DNA of 29,762 nt from Macrostomum lignano (lineage: Eukaryota): assembly GCA_002269645.1 (NCBI GenBank), contig NIVC01004092.1:1-29762 (forward strand), read 5' to 3'. The notes beneath the pieces are model-generated. The model was not told the DNA's origin, ran no database searches, and worked only from the letters and a program-made list of their open reading frames with translations. Shown here piece by piece: positions 6,743 through 16,748 of this stretch (the first letter of the stretch is position 1; every line of letters starts with the position of its first letter). Both the position numbers and the translations under genes were made by a program.

Positions 6743-6902
6743 AAGAGCTACGGTTTATCGACCAATGGGACGCCCTCCCACCCCAACTACCCCGATTGAA
6801 AGACGCGTATTAACTCCTGCTCTAGGAGGGGGAGAGAGAAAACTGCCTTGGAGTCGAAAATTCAACCCAATTCCAGACACGTTCCTTAGTGAAATACTCG
6901 CA
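6743..6902 (+). CDS. Candidate exon A (phase 2 to 0): [53 protein letters not shown]
   Basis: Acceptor ttctatacgtag|, donor |gtgagc, open frame. There is an in-frame ATG at 6765. Confidence 0.6.
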
Positions 6903-15900: not shown

Positions 15901-16748
15901 ACATCTACTGAAAGTACATCGCGTCAGATCTATGTTTAGCAGCATCTATTGCAACTGTATGGCGTCAGTTCTATTTTTAGATACATATAGCAAAACTATG
16001 ACGAAACTACCCAAACAAACAGTGACGTTAGTAGCTCGTACTATATTTTAGATAAACGCACATATTATCTATGCAATTCCATTTTTATCTGTGGTAACAA
16101 ATCTGAAAACTTTAATGACACCGGTATGGTAAGAAAACCACGCTTTTAAAACTATATGACATCATTTCTATTTTGAGACACCGCACAAAGAAGCTAAATG
16201 AGGTCAGTTCTATTATTAGAAAAATCTTACCAAAACAATAGGGCATCAGTTTTCTTCTATCGAAAAGTTTTGTTCCTTAAATAAGAATCTACATCATATT
16301 TAGTACGCATAGATATTTACCTGAATTTTGCATTCACAGATCGTCCAAACCCATTAACTGGCGAGAATGTCAGCAGTTTTGACATCAATCAGGAGCTGCG
16401 CAGCGACAGAGCCGGCGATCGTGGCAACGCCGTCAACGTCGATGACACCGGTGCCACCGCTATCGACAGTGTGGCCGCGGCTGTGGCCCCTGCTGAGGTT
16501 CCGGAAGGTGAGAGTTGTTGTCTGTTTTTCCACCTGTCTGCCTGTCTGTCTGTCTGTCTGTCTGTCTGTCTGTAGGGATGTATGTTTGTCTTAGTGGGTC
16601 TGTCTTTTAGTGTGTCAAGATGCCGTGGCTCAGTAATTAACTACATAATTGCTTGTGCAGTCTTTCTGCATGTCAAATACATTTTTAACAATTCGATATT
16701 CACGACAAACCCTTTTGCACAGGATACGATGAGGAGGAGACGTTCTGA
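6743..16748 (+). CDS. Multi-exon gene (about 16 exons, about 560 aa, 5' end unresolved) encoding an NP[LI]TG-repeat protein, probably disordered
   Basis: A manual chain of GT-AG exons has compatible phases and no internal stop, ending in GYDEEETF*. Ten [ND]P[IL][TAL]G motifs are spread over separate exons. Confidence 0.8.
7127..7164 (+). CDS. Candidate exon B (phase 0 to 2): [12 protein letters not shown]
   Basis: Acceptor aagtag|, strong donor |gtgagt, and phases bridge exons A and C. An alternative acceptor at 7149 would give a 15-nt microexon. Confidence 0.5.
7170..8105. repeat. 21-bp minisatellite (TTTCTCACATCGATTCACTGA)n in intron B-C
   Basis: About 44 units. They explain the SLISHID and VNRCEKS pseudo-ORFs. 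Confidence 0.97.
8409..8490 (+). CDS. Candidate exon C (phase 2 to 0): [27 protein letters not shown]
   Basis: Acceptor gtgtcaccag|, strong donor atg|gtgagt. Confidence 0.6.
8738..9274. repeat. (GATA)n microsatellite with GA interruptions
   Basis: Direct reading of the sequence. Confidence 0.98.
9331..9472 (+). CDS. Candidate exon D (phase 0 to 1): [47 protein letters not shown]
   Basis: Good acceptor ttttctgtag|. The donor |gtgcag is weak and was chosen for phase compatibility with exon E, so the 3' boundary is uncertain. Confidence 0.5.
9733..10136. repeat. (CTAT)n microsatellite, the reverse complement of the 8738-9274 tract
   Basis: Direct reading of the sequence. Confidence 0.98.
10147..10248 (+). 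CDS. Exon E (phase 1 to 1): [33 protein letters not shown]
   Basis: tttcag| ... g|gtagca; 102 nt; the other two frames hit stop codons. Confidence 0.7.
10343..10438 (+). CDS. Exon F (phase 1 to 1): [31 protein letters not shown]
   Basis: ttacag| ... g|gtgagc; 96 nt; DPITG motif. Confidence 0.8.
10447..10830. repeat. (GTCT)n microsatellite filling intron F-G
   Basis: Direct reading of the sequence. Confidence 0.98.
10873..10962 (+). CDS. Exon G (phase 1 to 1): [29 protein letters not shown]
   Basis: cccag| ... t|gtaagc; 90 nt; NPILG motif. A phase-compatible alternative start at 10849 adds PPPTHVPG. Confidence 0.75.
11060..11158 (+). CDS. Exon H (phase 1 to 1): [32 protein letters not shown]
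   Basis: ccgttag| ... g|gtaagc; 99 nt; degenerate RNP motif. Confidence 0.75.
11243..11538 (+). mobile_element. tRNA-derived SINE
   Basis: A-box-like tagcctagtg; B-box ggttcgattcc at 11286-11296; central ttcttgagcaagacactgaac...ccagctgtaaaatggg segment of the kind seen in CORE-like SINE domains; (TAA)n tail at 11522-11538. Confidence 0.75.
11575..12625 (-). mobile_element. Decayed, 5'-truncated RTE-clade LINE fragment (RT domain and C-terminus)
   Basis: Minus-strand frameshifted motifs occur in RT order: [68 protein letters not shown], then an EGRRGRG-like C-terminal motif. Confidence 0.85.
12000..12266. repeat. About 5 copies of a 52-bp unit inside the decayed RTE
   Basis: ctgtaacctcctgcatggcgtccgcatctcccggcagttttccaaagtcttc recurs at about 12023, 12074, 12126, 12178 and 12230. 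Confidence 0.9.
12708..12815 (+). CDS. Exon I (phase 1 to 1): [35 protein letters not shown]
   Basis: ttttgcag| ... g|gtatgt; 108 nt; DPIAG motif. Confidence 0.85.
13335..13466 (+). CDS. Exon J (phase 1 to 1): [43 protein letters not shown]
   Basis: Donor a|gtaatg; NPITG motif. The acceptor is uncertain: cccaaag| at 13334, or a non-canonical tttcgg| at 13301. Confidence 0.7.
14443..14514 (+). CDS. Exon K (phase 1 to 1): [23 protein letters not shown]
   Basis: aacag| ... a|gtaagc; 72 nt; NPLTG motif. Confidence 0.8.
14581..14679 (+). CDS. Exon L (phase 1 to 1): [32 protein letters not shown]
   Basis: ctgcag| ... aag|gttgca; 99 nt; NPLTGENC motif. Confidence 0.8.
14732..15346. repeat. 23-bp minisatellite (AATCCAGCTGTCCTCAGTTCCCT)x~27 in intron L-M
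   Basis: Direct reading; a few units are 22 bp. Confidence 0.97.
15363..15539 (+). CDS. Exon M (phase 1 to 1): [58 protein letters not shown]
   Basis: ccccag| ... g|gtaaac; 177 nt; two NPLTG motifs. Confidence 0.85.
15636..15725 (+). CDS. Exon N (phase 1 to 1): [29 protein letters not shown]
   Basis: tttttcatcaag| ... g|gtgaga; 90 nt; a clear paralog of the second half of exon M. An alternative acceptor lies at 15587. Confidence 0.8.
15878..16260. repeat. Old, diverged ~41-bp tandem repeat in intron N-O
   Basis: A cgtcagttctatttttag-like core recurs at 15880, 15921, 15962, then at about 16159, 16201 and 16243. Confidence 0.55.
16340..16507 (+). CDS. Exon O (phase 1 to 1): [55 protein letters not shown]
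   Basis: cattcacag| ... g|gtgaga; 168 nt; NPLTGEN motif. Confidence 0.85.
16534..16572. repeat. Short (GTCT)n tract in intron O-P
   Basis: Direct reading of the sequence. Confidence 0.85.
16723..16748 (+). CDS. Terminal coding exon P (phase 1): GYDEEETF*
   Basis: Acceptor ccttttgcacag|, TGA at 16746-16748, AATAAA downstream at 16861. Confidence 0.7.

Follow-up and report, generated by a model that had tools for sequence, protein, structure and literature searches.

A 13-exon gene among satellites in Macrostomum lignano, encoding a predicted disordered repeat protein of an unnamed family

The complete contig NIVC01004092.1 (29,762 bp) of the free-living flatworm Macrostomum lignano (Mlig_3_7 assembly; GCA_002269645.1), referred to here as the window, contains short GC-richer islands between tandem repeats at positions 6743-16748. 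An earlier note, by a reader working without tools, joined these islands into a single gene. The question raised by the locus is therefore whether these islands belong to one real gene, how far that gene extends and what kind of protein it encodes. A gene, BOX15_Mlig025565g1, was found at 7113-16748 on the forward strand, and we regard it as highly likely that this is an intact, expressed gene of 13 exons for a disordered repeat protein that belongs to an unnamed family.

Structure of the gene

The region from 6400 to 17000 was read together with a list of its stop-free segments, and segments bearing a recurring motif were seen in all three frames. A hand-assembled chain of these exons, used as the query in a homology search, identified a GenBank protein of 436 amino acids (aa) with 98% identity and 100% coverage, and a database look-up mapped the corresponding gene to the coordinates given above. 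After the borders were fixed, the 13 joined exons reproduced the BOX15_Mlig025565g1 protein (P0001, 436 aa) residue for residue with no stop. The coding sequence is intact (1,311 nucleotides (nt), 436 codons), starting at the ATG at 7113 and ending with GYDEEETF and a stop codon. Every intron has GT-AG borders, 12 of the 12 introns are in phase 1, and the internal exons all have lengths divisible by 3. The exons (26-177 nt) are separated by introns of 66-2,982 nt and have a GC content of 0.44-0.67, compared with about 0.3-0.4 in non-satellite intron sequence. The features of the gene, all on the forward strand, are listed below, with motif copies numbered in order.

7113-7164, forward: exon 1, with the start codon; ends with 1 extra base, and its donor GTGAGT abuts a 21-mer satellite; placed by the exact reconstruction of P0001 and by an N-terminus conserved in the paralogue P0004 and its locus (L003)
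10147-10248, forward: exon 2, with a conserved N-terminal block and a predicted helix
10343-10438, forward: exon 3, motif copy 1
10873-10962, forward: exon 4, motif copy 2; alternative in-phase acceptor at 10849
11060-11158, forward: exon 5, motif copy 3, degenerate (RNPTDLSG)
12708-12815, forward: exon 6, motif copy 4, with the most conserved block of the family
13335-13466, forward: exon 7, motif copy 5 (RNPITGSG); candidate cassette exon
14443-14514, forward: exon 8, motif copy 6 (NRNPLTGED); absent from the UniProt model P0002
14581-14679, forward: exon 9, motif copy 7
15363-15539, forward: exon 10, motif copies 8 and 9
15636-15725, forward: exon 11, motif copy 10
16340-16507, forward: exon 12, motif copy 11, followed by an acidic, Ala/Val-rich tail
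16723-16748, forward: exon 13, (G)YDEEETF and the stop codon, giving a C-terminal ETF-COOH
16861-16866, forward: candidate poly(A) signal AATAAA, 113 nt past the stop codon; a consensus match only, to a hexamer that is common in the window

Two in-phase AG acceptors, 24 nt apart, are available for exon 4. Use of the one at 10849 keeps the frame open and would add VPPPTHVP; the one at 10873 is the annotated acceptor, reproduces P0001 and matches the start of the paralogue exon.

The GenBank annotation of M. lignano is a genome-guided transcriptome, in which RNA-seq data were assembled with StringTie/TACO (PMC5730564), and this RNA-seq-derived annotation shows that the gene at 7113-16748 is transcribed and spliced across its repeat-filled introns. 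The gene is already known, being listed in GenBank as a hypothetical protein, and nothing substantial stands against the gene model.

Part of what the earlier note had proposed agrees with this model. Its central claim, one real multi-exon gene amid satellites, is borne out by the exact match to the annotated protein, and the GT-AG borders and compatible phases that it described hold for all 13 exons and all introns. The junctions 10248-10343, 14514-14581 and 16507-16723 are all present in the supported model, the end of the stop-free frame was placed exactly, and the GC-richer islands correspond to the exons. The gene was also rightly said to be largely missing from the list of open reading frames (ORFs), as exons of 26-177 nt escape a list of ORFs of at least 60 aa, save for chance read-throughs. 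However, the gene is not hidden, since it had been annotated on this contig from an RNA-seq transcriptome. The assembled chain located the gene well but overran its 5' end by about three exons and 124 codons, with ~16 exons, ~560 codons and a start at 6743, where 13 exons, 436 codons and the ATG at 7113 are supported.

A homeologous copy of the gene, BOX15_Mlig027991g2 (locus L002), matches the window locus at 96-98% identity across about 21 kb of exons and introns alike, with exons that are 99.5-100% identical to those of the window gene, and this locus is therefore useless for telling exon from intron. The GenBank model of the homeologue skips exon 7, though the exon is 100% conserved there (L002 16177-16328), and the UniProt model P0002 is without exon 8. 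The symmetric phase-1 exons 7 and 8 may thus be cassette exons. Judging from these alternative models only, skipping of either would alter the number of motifs and leave the frame unbroken.

The repeat protein and its family

The protein carries 11 copies of a motif with the forms [RK]x[ND]P[IL]xG and NPLTGENxxS[FY] (counted as [ND]P[ILVT]x[GL]), about one per exon. Early copies follow R[DN]PIxGxGxxG and later ones NPLTGENxxS[FY]xhxxE. The recurrence pointed out in the earlier note is genuine, with 7 occurrences of the strict form NP[LI]TG where composition would predict 0.001. Each intron lies a few codons ahead of a motif copy, and as these introns are in phase 1, each internal exon constitutes an in-frame module with one copy, or with two in the case of exon 10.

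Ser, Arg, Gly and Pro account for 40% of the residues and the protein is basic (net charge about +9). Modelling with AlphaFold2 from an alignment of 17 sequences gave a mean predicted local distance difference test (pLDDT) score of 44.7 and a predicted template modelling (pTM) score of 0.16, with secondary structure limited to one 11-residue helix and one 5-residue helix. The protein is accordingly predicted by the model to be almost wholly disordered, and a fold search was not made because the pLDDT of 44.7 was too low. No hydrophobic stretch fit for a signal peptide was seen on inspection of the N-terminus. A Pfam search with the protein and its halves found no direct family, in keeping with the description in the earlier note of an uncharacterised repeat protein that could not be assigned; across the family members scanned, only partial, motif-sized matches to PF22269 and 2C_adapt were seen. 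A sequence search of the PDB with the family profile gave 0 matches at E up to 10.

The first homology search returned 29 homologues, all from Platyhelminthes (Macrostomum paralogues, cestodes and trematodes), with E values of 1e-84 to 1e-18 and a best value outside the genus Macrostomum of 1e-52. When 1.84 billion representative proteins were scanned with the family profile using HMMER, 52 matches were found. Thirty of these 52 were looked up, 6 being without a usable taxon or name, and the named matches among the 30 were from flatworms, two nemerteans, one beetle and one bacterium, the bacterial protein sharing only the motif. Among the flatworm matches are monogenean proteins, a second group of paralogues from parasites and one M. 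lignano model that is joined to an ORF of a retrotransposon, and the nemertean members are from Tubulanus (LOC141906064) and Lineus (LOC135494118). The orthologue in Schistosoma mansoni, Smp_150640, is annotated "hypothetical protein". Neither Mlig025565 nor Smp_150640 was mentioned in the literature searched, and neither identifier was present in the supplements searched. A reading of the protein as an orphan is ruled out by these clear orthologues across flatworms and nemerteans.

The 17 aligned sequences are collinear with invariant motif residues. An N-terminal block, LPxVDxETGxKNRxVxRDPIxGLG, is matched by residues 36-62 of the window protein, in which R55, D56, P57, I58, G60, L61 and G62 are invariant in the 17 sequences. 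The core block, RDPIxGxGxFGxEWDPxxKYxGR, is encoded by exon 6, with R149 to G170 invariant; it is kept in the second flatworm paralogue group and is present in a weaker form in the nemerteans. A C-terminal array of Nx[ILV]TGEN(C)xx[FY], with a spacing of about 30 residues, accounts for six of the 11 motif copies.

Intron positions are common to the M. lignano paralogue (L003) and the Echinococcus multilocularis locus (L004), and the Echinococcus exon orthologous to exon 10 also holds two motif copies. As these positions are shared, the design of one motif per phase-1 exon is older than the divergence of Macrostomorpha from the parasitic flatworms. Sequence comparison places the protein in an unnamed, uncharacterised family that is present across all major flatworm groups and in nemerteans, with almost no members elsewhere.

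The flatworm orthologues (Smp_150640, the E. multilocularis "surface protein PspC" and those in Fasciola, Clonorchis and Hymenolepis, among others) and the nemertean relatives have collinear blocks and repeated NxxTGEN, and are of similar length (about 400-470 aa) with shared phase-1 intron positions. In contrast to the parasite orthologues, which end in YNIxTG, the window protein has an extra segment encoded by exon 7 and a unique acidic C-terminus ending in ETF. The nemertean proteins are longer and have N-termini that differ from that of the window protein.

Affinities, possible function and competing readings

Among the competing readings, the one that fares best is that the protein truly belongs, in divergent form, to the Jupiter/HN1 family (PF17054), with NPxTGE as a variant of NPPGG. 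Two M. lignano entries (P0002 and P0131) bear the UniRef names "Microtubule-associated protein Jupiter" and "Jupiter microtubule associated homolog 2", and the only named animal match to the family profile outside flatworms and nemerteans, among the 30 looked up, was a beetle protein (P0060; Dendroctonus ponderosae LOC109543605) of 169 aa with four RNPVTG[EQ]GxSSWDCK units. In hhalign, this protein and the family profile align across three repeat units with a probability of 94.6%. The beetle protein also passes the gathering score of Pfam JUPITER (31.9 bits versus 27), and its best alignment with JPT1, which is not significant, sets SRRNPPGG on SRRNPVTG. It is possible that the beetle protein is an evolutionary bridge or a case of convergence. 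Residues 33-80 at the N-terminus of a Lineus longissimus member (P0085; LOC135494118), which read RVLNPPGGRVSINLFGG... and include RVLNPPGG..., resemble JPT1 residues 16-56, with 44% identity over 41 columns (E=0.0035; hhalign probability 9%). The JPT1-like segment in Lineus could be a real domain combination or the result of a fused gene model.

However, Pfam JUPITER gave no match at E up to 10 with any flatworm or nemertean member or fragment. The hhalign probability between the family profile and a tetrapod JPT1 profile was 0.1%, the latter profile comprising 11 sequences of low diversity (effective number of sequences, Neff, 1.4) and the human JPT1 sequence, a 100% match to database entries, serving as bait only for fetching JPT1 entries. 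A hidden Markov model of 153 repeat units scored the PPGG sites of JPT1 no better than shuffled JPT1, and the 436-aa window protein is without any PPGG motif. The link to the beetle protein is a short repeated motif, and short Pro/Gly motifs readily arise by convergence in disordered proteins; NPLTGE-repeat proteins from bacteria (e.g. P0075) also score against the family profile. True membership of Jupiter/HN1 is therefore judged unlikely. The window protein is like Jupiter, HN1 and JPT1-JPT2, which are small to medium, disordered and basic with repeated Pro/Gly motifs (NPPGGxSSxxF versus NPLTGENxSSF here), but it has 11 motif copies as opposed to 2-3 and is three times longer than JPT1. Accordingly, it is not filed here under Jupiter, and a Jupiter-type, microtubule-associated mode of action is the leading guess as to what the protein may do.

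On this basis, we tentatively infer that the protein may serve microtubules or the cytoskeleton as a disordered, multivalent scaffold. Each copy of the short motif would bind weakly, as in Jupiter/HN1-type microtubule-associated proteins, and the copies would jointly hold a cytoskeletal partner, of which microtubules or tubulin are the most likely. The protein ends in EEETF-COOH, with acidic residues followed by an aromatic residue at the free C-terminus, and this end could recruit CAP-Gly proteins as a docking site. Alpha-tubulin, EB proteins and CLIP-170 carry EEY/F motifs at the C-terminus that are bound by CAP-Gly domains, and in CLIP-170 and Bim1 this motif is ETF (PMC11782662). The likeness of the window protein to these EEY/F proteins (alpha-tubulin, EB1/Bim1 and CLIP-170) is confined to the last few residues, with no homology elsewhere. 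A more speculative proposal, which we consider rather doubtful, is that the family represents an undescribed Jupiter/HN1-like branch built of exon-sized modules, possibly a shared derived character of flatworms and nemerteans, in which the ETF tail would connect to the CAP-Gly plus-end network and exon skipping would tune the contacts.

The poor scores in the Jupiter comparisons, the ease with which such motifs converge and the bacterial matches also weigh against the function proposed here, together with two further points. Neither the paralogue nor any orthologue has the ETF tail, which is therefore at most a feature of a single gene copy. No expression or localisation data for the family were found in the literature. 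In the gene model itself, the preference for acceptor 10873 over 10849 at exon 4 rests on the annotation and the paralogue.

A longer gene, with ~16 exons and ~560 codons, a start near 6743-6766 and extra exons at ~6766-6901, 8380-8493 and 9340-9470, is considered very improbable. The ATG at 6766 does open a 53-codon ORF (6766-6926) with a GC content of 0.52, the other two candidate segments have values of 0.45 and 0.53 so that the composition is in part exon-like, and GT and AG sites are present through which the extra segments can be chained. However, 1,643 distinct stop-free GT-AG chains of up to three exons join the ATG at 6766 to exon 2 in the right phase, and an open chain upstream of exon 2 is therefore not evidence of coding. 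The RNA-seq-derived GenBank model begins at 7113 and joins 7164 straight to 10147, and the resulting N-terminus, MIKSRS...RPRRIWLN, is kept in a 43%-identical paralogue (P0004) on another contig. When 6001-17200 was compared with the paralogue locus (L003) using tblastx, exon 1 and the later exons matched in collinear order, and no collinear counterpart of 6743-7112 or 7165-10146 was found; a match of 9442-9486 to this locus was short and non-collinear and was dismissed as exon evidence. The orthologues have only 15-40 residues ahead of the EELKK block, and none of the extra upstream segments carries the motif. Between 6743 and 10146, only exon 1 (7113-7164) has support, and the 13-exon gene starting at 7113 is retained.

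The 53-codon ORF at 6766-6926 on the forward strand, which has exon-like GC content, lies 190 nt upstream of the true start codon, and TATA-like sequences are present at about 6637 and 6707. This ORF had no Pfam match and no counterpart at the paralogous locus, and may be an upstream ORF in the 5' untranslated region, or meaningless.

There is next to no likelihood that the protein is a "surface protein PspC" or a TagH SH3-like domain protein, as database names would have it. Several orthologues carry these names in their source records, and some cestode orthologues match PF22269 at 26-29 bits. However, these matches span just 17-18 of the 62 profile positions, equivalent to one NxITGENCxxYD motif, the window protein has no match to PF22269, and its N-terminus is without a hydrophobic stretch. 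A literature search pairing "protein PspC" with tapeworm found no match. The UniRef names given to family members are mutually inconsistent (MBD, SH2, Ig-like, Shugoshin_C and CLASP_N), and automatic mislabelling is therefore likely.

A chance assembly or a decayed pseudogene, for which only the repeat-rich setting speaks, is refuted by the intact 1,311-nt coding sequence that matches the annotated protein exactly, by orthologues in other classes down to E=1e-52, by intron positions conserved as far as cestodes and by exons that are 99.5-100% identical in the homeologous copy, and can be set aside with near certainty.

Repeats around the gene and its wider interest

The introns of the 13-exon gene are largely tandem repeats, and arrays were listed by Tandem Repeats Finder in introns 1, 3, 9 and 12, that in intron 12 being (CTGT)10. 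The main elements are as follows.

7170-8105: 21-mer satellite, ~44 copies, at the start of intron 1, directly past the exon-1 donor
8738-9275: (TAGA)n array in intron 1, (TAGA)135
9732-10136: (TATC)n array in intron 1, (TATC)101, the reverse complement of (TAGA)n, giving an inverted pair
10446-10830: (TCTG)96, nearly all of intron 3
11159-12707, reverse strand: intron 5, with a decayed antisense fragment of a non-LTR (long terminal repeat) retrotransposon reverse transcriptase (11560-12700) with stops and frameshifts
14732-15341: 23-mer satellite, ~27 copies, filling intron 9

The inverted pair in intron 1 has 410-nt arms that are about 80% complementary and ~500 nt apart, and might allow the pre-mRNA or the DNA to fold into a long hairpin. 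The 21-mer satellite shares a core with a 19-mer satellite at 5449-6416 (TCACTGATTTC / GATTCACTGA), and the two cross-match in BLAST. These related satellites lie on either side of exon 1 and the promoter region, as though the gene began within a single old array.

Translation of the minus strand of intron 5 revealed reverse transcriptase (RT) motifs, such as LRIADDI, broken by stops, and a 52-bp unit inside the fragment has been amplified 5.2 times (11991-12257). Pfam found nothing useful in a 213-aa ORF of this fragment. Beside it lies a tRNA-like piece at ~11245-11320 (GGTTCGATTCCCG), probably derived from a short interspersed nuclear element; ARAGORN detected no tRNA in the window, and no Rfam family matched it.

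An intact ORF of 918 aa at 19663-22419 on the forward strand, located within a 65% GC island, matched RVT_1 (E=8e-29) and, weakly, an endonuclease/exonuclease/phosphatase domain, and is a possibly active non-LTR retrotransposon. The RT fragment in intron 5 was not detectably related to this ORF (E<1e-3). At the end of the contig (29548-29713) is the 5' fragment of a copy related to the 918-aa ORF, with about 73% amino acid identity. A perfect 15-mer array at 4364-4807 (AGGCGCCAGCACCAG x 29.6, 100% matches) gives rise to several long artefactual ORFs on both strands.

The locus shows that a reader without tools can find a real gene of tiny exons in repeat-saturated DNA, but that such a reader over-extends it where a homology anchor is lacking. 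The layout of one motif per phase-1 exon, preserved between Macrostomum and tapeworms as satellites came to fill the introns, makes this gene a clean example of exon-modular structure. The family includes orthologues in Schistosoma, Echinococcus and Fasciola, and no vertebrate counterpart was detected in the searches made here. If the protein is indeed a lineage-specific cytoskeletal protein, it would be of interest to flatworm cell biologists, and the transgenesis and RNA interference available in M. lignano make the function of this flatworm-wide, predicted disordered family directly testable.

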